NCBI GenBank assembly: GCA_023213395.1
Contig: CM041465.1
Span: 212,977,741-213,041,740, forward strand
Direction: 5' to 3'
DNA from: Cycas panzhihuaensis
Taxonomy: Eukaryota; Plantae; Cycadophyta
DNA: 64,000 nucleotides
In this document: positions 5,872 to 25,029 of the stretch, piece by piece
How positions within the stretch are numbered: the stretch's first letter is position 1
Layout of the letters: every line of letters starts with the position of its first letter
Translations under genes and position numbers: made by a program
The notes under the pieces: generated by a model
Seen by the model: the letters and a program-made list of their open reading frames with translations, nothing else
Told to the model about the DNA's origin: nothing
Database searches by the model: none

Positions 5872-6020
5872 TTGGAGCTGTTTTTCAGGGATGTCCCAAG
5901 CTCTGATAGACAGAATTTACTTCTGTGAATCTTTTCTGCATCGTAGTTGACTTCATCGACCCTACCAAAAATGTGAGAGAGAATGATATTAAACAACAAA
6001 TGTTGCTCAATCTTGTGGAT
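5872..6020 (+). pseudogene. Captured fragment of PP2A B' (B56) regulatory subunit
   Basis: FFRDVPSSDRQNLLL [frameshift/deletion] NLFCIVVDFIDPTKNVRENDIKQQMLLNLVD matches the B56 N-terminal core FKDVP..EKQNLF..KLNLCCVVFDF.DPTK..KEK.IKRQTLLELVD. Confidence 0.85.
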
Positions 6021-6232
6021 CAGATTGAAGCTGCTATTGTGCTATTGTGAGGATCATGAAAGCAAGGCAGATTTGAGACCATAATAATATTGTGGCAGAG
6101 GTGACAAGACAGTTACAATCAAGGTTTCTGCCAAACCCTATTGTAATAAAGAAACGAATTGAATCTCTTATTGAACGAGAGTTTTTATAAAGGGATAAAA
6201 GTGACCAAAAATTATACAAGTATCTTGCCTAA
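6021..6232 (+). pseudogene. CUL3: Captured cullin-3 C-terminal (neddylation/WHB) fragment, followed by probable 3'UTR
   Basis: QIEAAIV[8-nt dup][58 protein letters not shown], the canonical CUL3 C-terminus. Confidence 0.95.
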
Positions 6233-7185: not shown

Positions 7186-7280
7186 GCTTTGATACCAAAT
7201 GTTAGAAAATAATGGAGCCCGAAGTAGCTTTGATACCAAATAAAGGAAATAAAATGGAGCTAAACTATGCTCTGATACCA
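7186..7280 (-). repeat. Three tandem tRNA-iMet PBS copies (41-42 bp period)
   Basis: gctttgatacca 7186-7197, gctttgatacca 7227-7238, gctctgatacca 7269-7280; each is followed by aat and an LTR-end-like A-rich stretch. Confidence 0.9.
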
Positions 7281-8406: not shown

Positions 8407-9195
8407 AAATATAATAATAAGGTAATAATTAATTTTTATCGCAAGGTTTCTCATATCAATTCTATGTTTTGTGCTTATTTATTTTGTGTCTGTTATGTAT
8501 ATAAGTAATTTGTTTGTTTATGATTTCTAACAAATTTGTTAAGGTTGGTCCCTATATGGAAAAATATTTTGTGGCACATGTATCACCTACATATATACTT
8601 ATATGATCAAATCATCCTCAGAGAATAAAAGCTCAAGAAACACTTACTAAAAAAAATGGAATAAAATCAAAGTGACTTGAAGTTTGAACTTTAGTTAGGT
8701 GTACCTCCTTCAAAAGACTCTTATAACATAAAAACTTCTTACTTCTTTTAATAGGATCCAAAATTTGATTATATCTTTTAAACATGGACATTTTAGTGTT
8801 GCCAAACATAATGGCTTTTAGTCAAAACACTTCATGCAAATGCATGAATATCATTAATAACAAGGAGTGATAATGGAAGACTTTGCCTTCATCTAAATAT
8901 ATCTTTATTTCTCTATTTATTTTAATACTAAGGTATTTGGCCCAATACTATCTTGAAACTTTAGAAGATCTTTTAATGGGTAAATAATTCTTGCTCGATA
9001 TATTCATCACTCTAGCCTTTAAAATAATTATTTTATAGATAATCCTTACATCCTATGTATGTAAGGGTTGGATAAATAGGCTAGTTTATATGACATTGTA
9101 TTAAATAATACTTCTCCCTAGTAAATATTCTTTATAAGTGCCTTCTAATCCTTATTTTTATCATCAAATTCTACATCTTCCCTATCAAAATGAAG

Positions 9196-9196
<1 letters not shown>

Positions 9197-9235
<39 letters not shown>
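9197..9235. repeat. (TA)n microsatellite
   Basis: Seen directly. Confidence 0.95.
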
Positions 9236-9237
<2 letters not shown>

Positions 9238-9339
9238 CCTTAGGTGTAATAGTGAAGTATGCACCTCTAAAGCAAAATACTCCATTATCATATCTCAACA
9301 AAACTCATGGACAATATCATTCTTGTTATATAATATGAT

Positions 9340-16400: not shown

Positions 16401-17099
16401 TCCTAGGTTGATGGGATTGACTACAATGAAACCTTTGCACCTATCACTCAAATGAATATAATTAAAATCATTATATCTTTAGTAGTCAAGTTTGGCTAGG
16501 AAATTTATCAAACAGACATAAATAGTAACTTTATAAATGGAAACTTGGTTGGAGAGATCTATATTACTTAATCACCTATTTTTATTTTTTATCCTAACTT
16601 AGTTCCTTATGAAAATAGGTACAGGCATAATGTCACAGGATCACAAAGACAGAAAAAATATAGGAAAAATACATTGTATAAGTACACATAATTTGCTAGG
16701 TGGAAAACCCCTTCTGGGGAAGAAAAACCACCTCCTAATCTAAAATTTTATTAAGAGTAAAAGCTATACATAAAACCATAAGTAAACCACCTACATATGA
16801 TAAAACCAGCCTTTAAAAAAGGCTCTGGATAACCTCCTAGATTCTCAGAACCACCTCCTTGAATCTAGGAGAAGATATTAATAACAAGAAAGGTTCGTTG
16901 AAATGGGCAGTTGTGCATTTCAACGACCTTTCACATAATGATTAAATAAAGGCTAAACTTTAAATATTAGAATCACTTAAATATAAATTTACACATGTGA
17001 CTTAAATAAAACATAATAATAGCATAAAGGTAACATTAATAATCCTAACATCCCTCTTTAATGTTAACTTTTATAATATAGAAAAAGAAGGTCTTCATC

Positions 17100-20000
17100 A
17101 CATTAATCTCCCTTTGATGGAGACTTCTTTTATTTTTAACAAATCTCATAGGTTTAGAAACTTGACTTCAGTTAAAAACTTTGTGAGTATGTTAGCAACC
17201 TATAGATCTGTAGGACAATAAGACAAATAAACAATGTTATCAGTAACAAGATTACGAATAAAATACTGATGTAATTCTATATGTTTAGTTCTAGAATGTG
17301 CTACTAGATTTGTAGCAATAGTAATGGCACATTGATTATCAACTTTAAGTTCAATGGAAGAGTTAGAAGACAGACCAATTTTATTTAGAAGAGATTTAAG
17401 CCAAAGTGCTTCTTTGCTGGCTTCAACAAGTGCACGATATTCAGCTTCAGTCATTGATAGAGCTAGTGCCTGCATTTTCTTACTAGACCAAGTAATAGGT
17501 GAATAATCCATAAAAAATACATAACTTGATGTAGAGATCATTTGTATCACCTACCCAATCAAAATTAGTATATCCTATTAAAGTTAAAGGTTTACTATAA
17601 AAATTATAAGTTAGTCCATAAAAAATAGTGTTTTGAAGATATCGTAATATACGTTTAGCAGCTTTCCAATGTGATTCATGTGGTTGTTGCATATAACGTG
17701 AACATAAAGTGATAGCATGTGATATATCAGGGTGGGTATGAGTTAGATAAATAAGACTACTAATTAGTTATCTATATAATATTAGATCACATAAAGGTGT
17801 GGAACAATCAGTAGATAGTTTTACTCCTAATTGTAACGGATTAGAGACAGGTTTAGCATTTTCCATGTTAAACCGTTGAATTAAGTATAAAATATATTTA
17901 GGTTGAGATATAGTTATTTTTTAATCATGTTGATAAATTTGTAATCCAAGAAAATAATGTAGAATGCCTAAATCGGTCATTTCAAATTTATTCATTAAAG
18001 TAGATTTTAAATGATGAATGTTATTAGTTGATGATCTAGTGATTATAATATCATCAATATACATGATTAAAATAGTAATATTTTTATTTTCACATTTGAA
18101 ATAAAGATTTGGATCACTAATACATCTAGTATATCTAATTTTAATTAGATAATCGTCAACTTTAGTATACCAAGCTTGAGGAGTTTGTTTTAATCCATAA
18201 ATTGATTTCTTTAGTTTACAAACTAAATTAGGATTACCAATAAAGCTAGGTCACTATGACATGTAGATCTCTTCTTTGAGATCACCATTCAGAAATGCAC
18301 TCTTTACATCCATTTGATGGATTTCCTAACCAAACTTGGTTGTGAGAGCAATAATTATTTTAATTGTATTCATTTTTGCAACAGGGGCAAAGGTTTCGTT
18401 ATAATCTATGCCATCAATTTGAGAAAATCTTTTTGCAACTAGGCTAGCTTTATATTTTTCAACTGCGCATGTTAAGTTGTATTTTGTTCTATAAACCCAT
18501 TTACAGTCAACTACATTTTTCTGAAGTAGGAGTGGTATAAGATCCCAAGTTAAATTTTTAATTAGAGCATCAAATTCAACTTGCATAGCTTCCTACCATA
18601 CAGGATTATTGCTAGCTTGTTTAAAGGTTTTAGGATCATTATTGTCCATTATTTTAGCCATTAAGACATAGTTAGTATATAATTTTTGGGCAAGTGTTCG
18701 CCTGGTATCTGAAGGATTACCTACATCAGATCCAGTGTCAATAAGTATTTTCTTTGCCCATACAAGCTATTTGTTGATAATTATTTTTGTAGTTATAGGT
18801 TGAGTTGAGGAGCTAGCTTGAAAAGAAGAGTCTATTTCAGTAGGTTCAGATAGAGTCCAATTCTAGACTTGAGTAGATAAGGATTCTATGATTTCAAGGT
18901 CAACTTATTTATCGAAGGGGTTAACCAAATTGGTGTTGGTTAACAAATTTTCAACCGGAAGTTCTACATAGGTAGAGGTTGAAGAAGATCCTTCTTCATC
19001 AAATATTACATCACGTAAAATTAAAATTTGATGTGTGACTGAATCCAAAAGTCTATAAGCTTTACTTTCTTCGTTGTATCCAACGAAGATATATTTTTGA
19101 CTCTTAGGATCTAGTTTCTTATATTTTTCTTTGGAAACGTATCCCCACATAATACTTCCAAAGATTCGTAAATGATTGACTAAAGGTTTTCTTCCAGACC
19201 ATTTTTGTTCTGGAGTAACATTTTATAGGCATTTACTAGGTAGATGATTTAGAATATAGTTGGAGCAGTTAATTGCTTCAACCCACAACTTTAGGTCAAG
19301 GTTCTTTGTATGTAACATGTAATGAGTCATCTTAACAAGAGTGTAGTTTTTGCATTCAGCAACATCGTTTTATTGAGGAGTGTATACAACAGAATACTGA
19401 AGATGAATTTCGTACTTTTTATAAAAGGAAGTGAATTTACCACTTAAGTATTCCTTGGCATTATCAGATCTAAAAATTTTAATTTTTGAGTTTGATTAGT
19501 TTTCAACAGGCGTTTTGAATTCAACGAAAATATCAAACACTTAACTACATGTTTTGAGTGTGTAAACCCAACATTTTATTAAAAAATTATCAATAAATGT
19601 GACAAAATAATGAGAGCTAGAATATGATGTTACATGAAAAGGTCCACATATGTCAGAGTGAACAAGTTCAAGTGGAACTTTCACTTTGAATTGAGTTTTA
19701 TATGGAAATAGGTCCATGTGTTGCTTACCTATTACACAGGCTTCGCAGACACCATAAATAGTATTTTAAGGATGGAAGACCATGAACCATGTCATGTCTT
19801 TTTAGATATTAAAATTTTCTATAACTAGTATGACCAAATCGTGCATGCTAAAGTTTACTAACTGAGTCAGATTTGGCAATAAAGGCACTGAAAGATTTTG
19901 TTTTGTTATTTTCTAGACTTGTTAAACTATAGAGACCTATGCTATGTTCAACAGGTCCTAAGGCAATATGTTTAAATTTGTTTGATGGCTCTTTAATGAT

Positions 20001-21309
20001 AAATTTAACTTTCCAGAATTTGACAACAAGATCTTTTTGGCAGATTTGATAAATAGAAAGTAGGTTTGGTACTAAACTAGGTACGTAAAAGATGTCATTT
20101 ATTGAACCATCTTTTAAGGTAACATCACTTGATCCTTTTACTTTAAGTTAGGTTCCACTTCCAAAATAAATCTCTTCTTTAGAGTTAGTTTCTGATTAAT
20201 AAGTGGATAAGTTTTTCTCGTATCCTATCATGTGATGGGATGCACCATAGTCAAGGATCCCTTATGCTAGTTGATTAGTTAGGGTAACAAATGCAAAAGT
20301 TATTGCCGTTAGAGAACGATTATGAGTTTGTCGATTTTTTGGTCAGGATTGAGGTCAGTTTTGCAATCCCTTGGAAGCTTTCCATGCTTTCGAAGCTATT
20401 CTACTTCTACAGAAATAAATAGTGTGGCCTCTTTTATGACAATAGGCACAACTAGTGTTCTGAGAAGGATTTACATTGTTCCAATTAGAAAATGACTGAT
20501 TAGAAGTATTCTGATGTTTAGATGGACCAAAATACTTAATATTATTTTGAGAGTTAGGTGGTGAACCTCTATGAGGTTTCTAAAATTTTGGATTACTATT
20601 AAAATTGTTCAGATGTTTACTTTTATTTTGTGGCTTAGTTTTAGAAAACAAAGCCTAGGAAGTATCTTTCAATATGCCTTTTTGAATTAACATCGTTTGA
20701 TGTTCTATCAATTGGTTTGTCAATTGATTGAATGTTATAGGAGGATTGCTAGCTTGTTGTCTAGCAGTTTTAAAAAAATTAAAATGTTCTGAAAATTTAT
20801 TTATTGCAAGACATACGAGTATCGTCATCTTTAGCATGCATGATTTTTTATTCAGTATCACCTACTTTGGTTTTGGATTTAATACAGCTACCTAGGTCTT
20901 TATTAATTAGTTAAATTTTACATCAAAAATCCTCAACTTTAGAAAAATCGTCATAAGTGAGGTCATACAATTATTGTTCTAAGATAGCCAATTGATTTAT
21001 ATCGACCTTATCATATTTTTCCTACAGAGTGTTCCAAATAGTGGCAAGATCGTCTGTTTCAGAAAACTACCGACTGATTTCTGGTGAAAGTGAGTTCAGG
21101 ATAGTGCCTAGGGCTAAATCTAAGTTCATCAGATATACCATATAACTATCTGAAGTTGCATTAGTTAGTTTTTTAAATTCACCTATCACATATCGCCATA
21201 TCTTTTACTGTTTAAGCTGATGGGATATGCGATTCATCCAATCAGCATAATTTAAGCTTGTTAAAACTAGAATTGGAACGCAGGTGGTTGTTCCTGGCAT
21301 TAAATCCAT
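17100..21309 (-). pseudogene. Copia gag-pol of element B (stops and frameshifts)
   Basis: KLDPKSQKYIFVGY (INT C-terminus), KWVYRTK...GIDYNETFAPVA (RT), WKAAKRILRYL, EAEY..HSRTKHIE (RNase H). Confidence 0.92.
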
Positions 21310-21422
21310 ATTGGAAATTGAGTTTGTTTGAAGATTGAAAGATATAAGAGTAGGTGCAAAGAAATAATCACTAAGTAAGGTTACCAAACATTAGATTAAT
21401 ATTTTATAGTTATGATTAAAGA

Positions 21423-22829
21423 CTGAAAAACATAATAGGATAAATAAATACCTTTCCCCTTAAAAAGAATTATATGTTTCCATTTTCCTTAGAAGATAAA
21501 TAGTCTCTCTTAATCCTTAAAAAAAAAAAATAGTCTCCCTTGACCTAAATAGTCCCCCTTAAAAAATAAGTGTTTTCTTTAGATTCCTTTATTATTATTT
21601 TACTTTTGTTAAGTAACAAATAATAAAGTATAAAATATATTAATTTAAAAAAAACTAATGAGTAATTTAAGTATCTTAAAATGAAAATGATGTTGAAGAT
21701 GTAAAACTAATTTAGTTTAATTTACAAGTTATATATATATATATATATATATATATGAAGATTAATAATAAAAAAGGAGGGATTGATTGTCCTTAGTTAA
21801 TTAGGCTTTATTTAAAAGAATATAAGTATATAAATGTATTTATAAATTATAATAAAGAAAGAATTAATTTTTAAGAAGTAATGAGAGAGGAATGGTTTAT
21901 TTATATACCAATTATAATGTTAAGAAAAAAATTGAAGGGGAGGGGTTGATTTGATTTATAAACTAAGTGTTATAGGAGGGAGGGGTTGCACATTAAATTT
22001 ACCTTAAGGTTGTATTGAATATATATATATCAGGTACAAAATAATCAAGGAGGAGTGAATTAATTTTACCTAAGTTAATTAGGTTTTATTTGAGAAAGTA
22101 TATATTTAAATATATCCATATAAATAATACTGAGAGAGGATTAAAGGTTATAATTACCTTATTGTAATAAAAAGAAGATTAATTTTAAGAAGAAGTGAAG
22201 GGGGAATAGTTTATTTTAACATTAAGAAAAAATTATATATCACTTATAATGGAAGAAGATTAAATTATTAAGTGTGGGAGGGGGGAGGGGAAATTTAACA
22301 AGAATGAAGTTATAAATGTAAAGAGGGAAGGGTTGATATTTAAAAAGGTAAATCAAATGTAATAAAAATGAAATTAATAAAGGAGGAATAAATCAAGTAT
22401 GAAATAAAACAGAGAAAGGGTTAAATTATAAACCAAATGTTAAAAAAGGGGAGGTTTAATTTAATTTAAATATTAAGTGTTATAGAAGGGGGTTTATTTT
22501 AAATTTGTAAATTAAATGTTATATGGAGGAATAGAACAAAGTATAAGGAGGGGAAACTAATGTAATAAGAAGGTATTATTTTTTATTTTGCCTAAGATAT
22601 ATTAGAATTAAAGAACAGATTATGATTAAATGATAATGTGTAACACTTATTAAGATTTAAAAGGTTTATTTTTGTTTAACCTAAGGTTGTTTATATACAT
22701 ATAACTATATATATAAAAAATCGAATAAAATTAGGCGCGGACCTGACATTATTTTGGATTTTATAAAATAAAGAAAATTTAATAGAAAATTAGGGTCTAG
22801 GGGGGGTAAGGCGACGAAACCCTACTTAC
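21423..22829 (-). other. Putative intron in the leader of element B
   Basis: Minus-strand AG|GTAAGT at 22829, a pyrimidine-rich body, and TTTTTCAG acceptor at 21423-21430, ~115 nt upstream of the gag ATG. Confidence 0.45.
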
Positions 22830-23277
22830 CTAGTTCGTTCATTCGTGGCAGCTCCTCTTCAATGGCGGTTGGTTGCAGGTTGATCTTGGCGACGATGGCA
22901 TTCAATTCATCTTCAAGTTGAGGCGTTTGATTATTGTTCCTCTTTGTTTAGAGCGAGCGAGGCTCTTATGCAACTGGTGATGTGTATCAACATGATTTGT
23001 GAAAAGGGCATCTTCTCCGTCTACTTTGTTACAGCAAGGGTTTAATTATTGCTCCTTTGCATATGACTAGGATTCTTGGATGGCTACAGGTTTAATAATG
23101 CCTCTCTTTCAAACATTAAAAATGCCTTTGATAAGGCTCAGTTCTGGAAAATTCTTCTAACAGTATTTGTGATTTGGGATCATGCTTTTCTTCGTGGCGT
23201 GATGGTGTTTGAGGGTTTTGCACTCCTCCGTCTAGGCGTCCCCTAATCTTACTTCTTTTTTTTTTTATAGGTTTGTT

Positions 23278-23874
23278 GGATGGGGTGCTTTTACTCTTGC
23301 TACTAAATGGACTCTTTTGACAGAGGCCTTGATTATTCCAAAGCTTATTTTGGAAGCACGTTTCTAAAATAAATCTACTGCCACGTTATATGATAATGTG
23401 AATATTGAGGATATATCACCACTAGTTGATTGGCCTACACTTGCATACATACTTGTTGGGCATGAAGATTTGTCATCAACCACTATTGGCCACTCAATTT
23501 CAGTGAAGTCCCCATATAAAGTTAATTCTGTATCAGCTCATATAAATTTTATAGCTATGTCAGCACCATACATGCTACACCTACACTTTGTGATTGTCTC
23601 TTCATCCATAATTGATTTGCATGAAGTGGTTGATTATGAAATAAAAAAGGTGGATTCTGCTGGTGAAACAGTCACTGACGGCATGGAACATATGTTTAAC
23701 ACAACTACACAATTGTGATTTGGCTGTTATTTACGACTTACTGAGGTGAAGCAACTTTTGTATTCAGCAAGGCATGTGGCTCTCCAAATGGTTTATTCTC
23801 CTAAGGATCAATCTCAACAGGCGGCTCTATTTTAGCTAGTACAACGGACTACTACATTTCCATTTAAATGGGGA
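23278..23874 (+). pseudogene. APC1: Captured, intron-less, circularly permuted fragment of anaphase-promoting complex subunit 1
   Basis: One frame: GWGAFTLATKWTLLTEALIIPKLILEARF...NIEDI | SPLVDWPTLAYILVGHEDL...MSAPYMLHLH...DGMEHMFNTTTQL*FGCYLRLTEVKQLLYSARHV...LVQRTTTFPFKWG. Both blocks match APC1. Confidence 0.92.
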
Positions 23875-25029
23875 GTGAGTATATGCCACAATCTTTCATG
23901 ATGGTAGTCGAGGATAATACAGAAACTGAAACACAGAGAGGTCATATGCATCACCTCTGTAGATTCATATGATCATGCAACATGGATCTCGTATGCTGTA
24001 GCTTTGATACCTTGTGAAAATAGGTACAGGCACAATGTCATAGGATCATAAAGACAAAAAAAATACAGGAAAAAGACATTGCACAAGTACACATAATTTG
24101 CCAGGTGGAAAACCCCTTCTAGGGAAGGAAAACCACCTCCTAATCTAAACTTTTATTAAGAGGAAAATCTATACATAAAACCATAAGCAAACCACCTACG
24201 TATAATAAAACCAGCCTTTGAAAAAGGCTTTGGACAACCTCCTAGATTCTCGGAACCACCCCTTGAATCTAGGAGAAGATATTAATAACAAGAAAGGTTC
24301 GTTGAAATGGGCGATTACGCATTTCAACGACCTTTCACATAATGATTAAATAAAGGCTAAACTTTAAACATTAGAATCACTTAAATATAAATTTACACAT
24401 GTGACTTAAATAAAACATAATAATAACATAAAGGTAACATTAATAATCCTAACATTCCTAAACTTAAAGTCTCTTTATGGTATTAAATAAGGCCTTAGGG
24501 CTTGCTATGATAAAATTGATAAATATATCCTATAAATTAGCTCTAGTATATGTGTAGAGAAAATAATAATATTATTCTTTTAATTTCAAAAGAAAAAATA
24601 ATATTATTATTCTTTTACTTTTACATATTGATGATATTATTATTATTATTGATTCATTATTTCATAATTCTAATTTTAAAATATAACCTAATATTACATT
24701 TTAAAATGACTAACTTAGAATTACTTCATCTTTCCTTAGACTTCAAATATACTAAGAAAACTCAAGAATTTCTATTTTACGACTAAAATATATGTTAGAT
24801 TTGCTTAAAAGATTTAATATAGAAACTTGTAAGATAACCCCAACTCTTCTTCAATCATGAGTTAATCTTACTCTTAATTATGATTCTTCATTGGTCAATG
24901 GCACTTTGTACTAATAGTTAGTTGGCATCCTATTTTATTTAATCCATATACGTCCCAGTATATCTTATGTTGTTATTTTATATTCTTGGTTTATGTAAAA
25001 ACTACATGATTCACACTAATAAATCAAGT

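Follow-up and report, generated by a model that had tools for sequence, protein, structure and literature searches.

A circularly permuted APC1 fragment, antisense in the leader of a copia retrotransposon and possibly copied once round from a spliced RNA piece

Analysis of the window, that is, the whole stretch of 64,000 nucleotides of Cycas panzhihuaensis DNA under study, revealed a degenerate fragment of APC1, a cell-cycle gene, in which the downstream part of the coding sequence precedes the upstream part. The fragment lies in the leader of a Ty1/copia element, and its sense strand is opposite to that of the element. With confidence only a little above even, we favor the explanation that the reverse transcriptase of the copia element copied one spliced piece of APC1 RNA, about 588 nt in length, once round and that the copy became part of the leader.

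The identity of the fragment was established by protein comparison. A phmmer search of 1.84 billion proteins returned 38 matches, the best of which was a partial APC1 of Taxus chinensis (E 3.6e-27, 62% identity), and this protein together with the other long matches carries the Pfam domains Apc1_MidN, APC1_3rd, APC1_C and ANAPC1. An insertion (SPYKV.SVS) and a deletion of three residues are shared by the fragment and gymnosperm APC1, angiosperms being without both, and the APC1 nearest to the fragment is that of a Ginkgo model. Searches of Pfam and of the sequences of solved structures with the three pieces of the fragment gave no match, which for Pfam is due to this part of APC1 falling between the Pfam domains. 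Similarly, no short relatives of the junction-spanning piece were found by search and the protein atlas provided no lead.

It can be seen from the translation that a single frame runs on the plus strand from 23272 to 23880, with the fragment itself occupying some 600 nt (23272-23874) and containing three in-frame stops at 23365, 23719 and 23833. The frame opens with block B (F-V-G-W-G-AFTL ... NIEDI) and continues into block A (SPLVDWP ... QRTTTFPFKWG), the two being joined in frame at 23415/23416. When APC1 proteins were compared with the window by tblastn, block A (23416-23877) corresponded to residues 682-835 of the Ginkgo model (E 6e-47) and block B (23278-23436) to residues 832-884 (E down to 7e-11). 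The residue order is thus reversed between the blocks and the downstream part of APC1 is encoded upstream in the same frame, which corroborates the block swap described in an earlier note on this DNA. In its present state the APC1 fragment is dead, a non-coding fossil.

The two ends of the fragment coincide within the gene. The pentamer TGGGG at 23281-23285 recurs at 23869-23873, giving a spacing of 588 nt (196 codons), the same period as had been proposed, and it forms part of a terminal repeat whose left copy, TTT(GTT)GGATGGGG at 23272-23285, and right copy, TTTAAATGGGG at 23863-23873, represent the codons of F-G-R-G. The earlier reading that the fragment begins and ends at the same codon with a redundancy of about 10 nt is upheld, the redundancy amounting to 11 nt with 3 nt extra in the left copy. 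Of the extent first assigned to the fragment, 23278-23874, the end stands and the start is moved to 23272 by the left repeat copy. Both repeat copies have W (TGG at 23281-23283 and 23869-23871) where every APC1 has R, and this could stem from two independent CpG decays or from one altered template base copied twice. The ends of the 588-nt unit pair with each other no better than shuffled sequence does.

The exon map used to interpret the fragment is a phylogenetic bracket built from angiosperm and moss-like APC1 loci and not from the host's own gene. One source of the map was a collection of mis-predicted short gene models in protein libraries, which run into introns at fixed points. More than 20 of these models break at the same intron sites, with at least 10 breaking before ALD(K/R)CRE (non-seed-plant-like ones included), at least 12 after RLNE, three after DLQQ and three after APLQ, and one model (P0015) skips exactly AQLW..LLTE. 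The other source was a scan of metagenome contigs for WPEFHN(A/G)VAAG, by which plant APC1 genes with introns were retrieved. The metagenome loci, with introns or cDNA-like, were angiosperm-like (L021, L031, L034/L002, L038, L029 and L028) or moss-like (L069, L075 and L025). Exon ends with GT and AG are legible in L021, L031 and L038, and the introns are all of phase 0. Three of the six intron sites (i4, i4b and i5) are identical in the moss-like L069 and L075, and i4 and i4b fall within the fragment. As moss-like and angiosperm loci have these three sites in common, the sites predate the origin of seed plants, and the host would be expected to have them.

With reference to Table 1, the exon parts of the fragment together amount to 588 nt, and the intron sites i2, i3, i4 and i4b, as placed from other land plants, are crossed without an intron. 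The crossing of four intron sites in this manner argues that the source was a spliced RNA, and the earlier observation that introns are missing is confirmed by the continuity of the fragment across these four conserved positions of the bracketed map. The point at which the fragment starts and ends (F-G-R-G) is the middle of E3. On the same bracketed map, the junction at 23415/23416 is located 30 nt inside E4b (codon 10 of 33) and 21 nt inside E1 (codon 8). In the relatives that were read, GT after the B point and AG before the A point are absent, CA being found after the former and AT or AA before the latter. The seven codons before SPLVDWP were considered as the missing start of E1 (ALD.CRE) and were rejected, as the continuation of E4b matches them better.

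Table 1. Features of the copia element and of the APC1 fragment that it carries, with the corresponding exon bounds in other land plants (a slash marks the exon border)
Feature	Position	Strand	Description	Exon in other land plants (source)
Target-site duplication TTCCT	16603-16607 and 24455-24459		both sides of the element	
3' LTR	16608-17050	-	direct-repeat comparison	
Polypurine tract	17051-17059	-	short purine tract adjoining the 3' LTR	
Degenerate gag-integrase-RT-RNase H region	17200-21387	-	ORF debris	
Leader, 2.6 kb	21388-24000	-	APC1 fragment, AT-rich/purine-rich repeats, possible second host fragment (23067-23243)	
Primer-binding site	24001-24012	-	AGGTATCAAAGC; 10/12 matches to the tRNA-Met-i type consensus TGGTATCAGAGC	
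5' LTR	24013-24454	-	TG..CA; 93% identical to 16608-17050	
E3, 3' part	23272-23325	+	F-V-G-W-G-AFTLATKWTLLTE; opens with left terminal repeat 23272-23285 (translation, tblastn, relatives' exon end)	ag/AQLW ... LTE/gt (L031, L021, L038)
E4a, complete	23326-23385	+	20 codons, with a stop at 23365; intron-free at both borders	ag/A(L/F)TVPKL ... QQNAT/gt, 20 codons (L031, L021, moss-like L069)
E4b, first 10 codons	23386-23415	+	B side of junction, mid-exon; ungapped tblastn	ag/VNLDPN ... APLQ/gt, 33 codons (L031, L038, L014, L069)
E1, from codon 8 to end	23416-23745	+	SPLVDWP ... RLTE; stop at 23719; A side of junction	ag/ALDKC ... NE/gt, ~110 codons; start ag/ALD(K/R)CRE read from at least 10 mis-predicted models and from L021 and L038
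E2, complete	23746-23820	+	VKQLL ... SQQ; no intron on either side	ag/VRR ... QQ/gt (L021, L038; models P0011, P0034, P0022)
E3, 5' part	23821-23874	+	AALF*LVQRTTTFPFKWG; stop at 23833; closes with right repeat 23863-23873	as for the 3' part

The fragment is carried by a minus-strand Ty1/copia element, whose LTRs start with TG (TA in one copy) and end with CA. Its coding debris matches the Pfam family RVT_2 (E 8e-16) and the retroviral integrase SH3 domain (E 1e-18), and the integrase precedes the reverse transcriptase. The APC1 fragment is 126 nt from the primer-binding site, and its sense strand is on the plus strand and hence antisense to the element. The LTRs, the TTCCT duplication, the primer-binding site and the RVT_2 match substantiate the location inside a copia leader that had been claimed previously, to which the antisense orientation is now added. 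Capture by an LTR retrotransposon, also part of the earlier reading, holds as well, since the fragment lies between LTRs with a target-site duplication and was propagated with the element.

Several other components of the leader were recorded. The middle of the leader (21935-22530) is filled with degenerate, purine-rich repeats about 40 nt long (AAGGGGAGG..TTATAG..), and the (TA)n tract found at 21729-21757 has a match in another at 9193-9238. The part at 22790-22950 is richer in G+C, and on its minus strand there is an open stretch (..LEDELNAIVAKINLQPTAIEEELPRMNELG) with GTAAGT at its end, as at the end of an exon; no Pfam match was obtained. To the left of the APC1 piece, 59 codons on the plus strand (23067-23243) gave a weak match below the Pfam cut-off (E 0.004) to DUF846, a Golgi protein of the TVP23/ECHIDNA type, and a word-based protein search with this left-flank ORF was blank. 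These codons, whose read depth is several-fold that of the APC1 piece, may represent a further host-derived piece of this leader. A second copy of the leader was not found within the window.

Elsewhere in the window, a second minus-strand element has its primer-binding site, of the tRNA-Met type, in three tandem copies (7186-7280). Host fragments on the plus strand follow at a distance of about 1 kb, in the region of 5943-6187, and match the neddylation domain of a cullin (Cullin_Nedd8, E 6e-13) and a PP2A B56 subunit (E 9e-4). The cullin and B56 fragments are the second case in the window of host pieces lying antisense to the leader of an LTR element.

The APC1 fragment is flanked in an exon-like fashion by a T-rich tract with AG on the left (23250-23271) and by GTGAGT on the right (23875-23880), motifs that are rare in the window (70 of the left and 25 of the right kind per 128,000 positions). 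In most other copies of the chimeric leader, G replaces T at 23876 and thereby converts GT to GG. An exon-like unit, or retained ends of APC1 introns, was considered and rejected, since every relative has the end point in mid-exon and since the donor-like site is peculiar to this copy; the resemblance to splice sites is probably a matter of chance.

These other copies were recognized in sequencing data. In three other samples, both ends of the fragment and its internal junction are bridged by short DNA contigs at 87-96% identity. Single contigs extend over the left end (23171-23334, 6 differences), over the junction (23377-23517, 13 differences) and from the right end across the primer-binding site to the LTR (23793-24022, 29 differences). 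Each place is covered by several distinct contigs, up to 8 over one place. Such bridging contigs indicate that the chimeric leader is multicopy, that it was spread by transposition and that it is older than these copies. The depth is low over the fragment and thousands-fold over the LTR, and coverage of the flanks (23112-23239 and 23944-24007) exceeds that of the fragment several-fold, which fits a subfamily having gained the fragment. At position 23473 the other copies hold the parent-like residue. The matches listed include no empty-site contig and no parent-gene contig, and none of the RNA runs contained the stretch.

An exact single period with a short overlap points to a template that was closed or self-rejoined, and closure in mid-exon on both sides makes a spliceosomal circle unlikely. 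In the explanation that we favor, the template would be a piece of APC1 RNA reaching from 21 nt inside E1 to 30 nt inside E4b. The reverse transcriptase would enter mid-piece at F-G-R-G of E3, copy to the 5' end, resume at the 3' end of the piece, stop at the entry point with an overshoot of 11 nt and return to the element. The template may have been a ring closed otherwise than by canonical back-splicing, or a linear piece in which the enzyme would jump from the 5' end to the still uncopied 3' end of the same molecule, and the two forms fit equally well. RNase H would destroy the template behind the polymerase, such that the template runs out at the point of entry and only one turn is completed. 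From the earlier proposal that reverse transcription went once round a circular template, we retain the closed or self-rejoined template, whereas closure by back-splicing is not supported.

The capture would have taken place while the plus strand was being made, soon after the second strand transfer, which occurs at the primer-binding site. Because the APC1 sense is opposite to the copia sense, DNA made on APC1 RNA would be the plus strand of the element. The proposed timing is drawn from the antisense orientation and from the position near the primer-binding site, and of these the orientation would also be produced by the insertion of a free cDNA in random orientation at a break. Subsequently the chimeric element would have transposed, leaving several copies.

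An event at the DNA level could also be envisaged, in which a processed APC1 cDNA, circularized or tandem, was inserted into a break of a chromosomal copia leader through rolling-circle or break-induced synthesis, or through opening and ligation, with the copia transposing afterwards. Such an event would account for an end-joined closure in mid-exon, for a random orientation that here happens to be antisense and, provided that the circle was copied, for the period and the overlap. We nevertheless regard it as unlikely, for a circle that is simply opened and ligated leaves no overlap of 11 nt, and the repeated occurrence of antisense host fragments in the leaders of this window, close to primer-binding sites, is left unexplained.

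The mid-exon position of the junction is typical of ordinary copy-choice, and the accepted way in which LTR elements make captures is template switching between co-packaged RNAs (PMC13317346). Two unrelated switches between separate linear APC1 mRNAs could accordingly be imagined, with copying from F-G-R-G to near the start of E1, a hop into E4b and an exit at F-G-R-G. By a rough estimate, however, an exit within 11 nt of the entry would occur by chance in only about 1-5% of cases for a template of several kb, and no homology between the flanks and the 11-mer was visible that could guide both switches, which renders this course quite improbable. Least probable of all, and very much so, is the back-spliced APC1 circRNA, reverse transcribed once round and captured, that the earlier note had put forward: the exact single period with its short overlap, the missing introns and the in-frame junction agree with it, a back-splice would keep the frame too as the introns here are all of phase 0, and such pseudogenes exist in mouse, enriched near LTRs (PMC4897178), but on the map common to angiosperms and a moss-like plant the junction does not link the 3' end of one exon with the 5' start of another exon upstream, and a rescue would need two new or shifted introns in the host lineage, or cryptic sites.

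Returning to the favored explanation of one APC1 RNA piece copied once round, a broader and rather doubtful proposition is that this copia lineage possesses a regular route, whereby the reverse transcriptase, directly after the transfer of the plus strand at the primer-binding site, wanders onto small host RNAs and makes a single round of each. If such a route were real, the leaders would preserve fossils of small host RNAs that were closed or rejoined themselves, including circles that are not back-spliced, for instance ligated mRNA decay fragments.

Pseudogenes derived from circRNAs have been described in mouse and human, their defining feature being a junction that coincides with back-splice exon ends, and non-collinear junctions can also arise by reverse transcription from open-ended RNAs whose ends are close together (PMC4897178). 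The APC1 fragment is similar to circRNA-derived pseudogenes (Dong et al. 2016, Cell Res 26:747; PMC4897178) in being intron-free, with non-collinear exons and no poly(A) tail, as well as in its multiple copies and its association with LTRs. In those pseudogenes, however, the junction is a back-splice at annotated exon ends, such as exon 6 to exon 2, whereas in the APC1 fragment both sides lie inside exons. A permuted exon order alone is no proof of a back-spliced circRNA, and the junction must be compared with the exon ends.

The capture of host fragments by LTR elements is common, above all in plants with very large genomes, and is very common in gymnosperms, with about 400,000 fragments per genome (PMC13477047). 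Like the plant captures attributed to aberrant template switching (PMC13317346, PMC13477047), the fragment described here is an intron-free host piece between LTRs that was carried into later copies. The published captures are collinear, though, and a one-period permutation with overlap and a consistent antisense position near the primer-binding site is not described there. The element as such resembles other Ty1/copia elements in its TG..CA LTRs, its 5-bp target-site duplication, its tRNA-Met type primer-binding site and its gag-integrase-RT-RNase H layout with RVT_2, and differs from ordinary ones in an unusually long leader (2.6 kb) with host cargo and in a degenerate coding region. How host pieces enter LTR elements has mostly been inferred so far, and a one-turn antisense piece with a short overlap, situated beside the primer-binding site, preserves a rare trace of the behavior of a reverse transcriptase. 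Overall, the fragment is an LTR-element gene capture of a one-turn, permuted and antisense kind, set apart from circRNA-derived pseudogenes by a junction that lies within exons.
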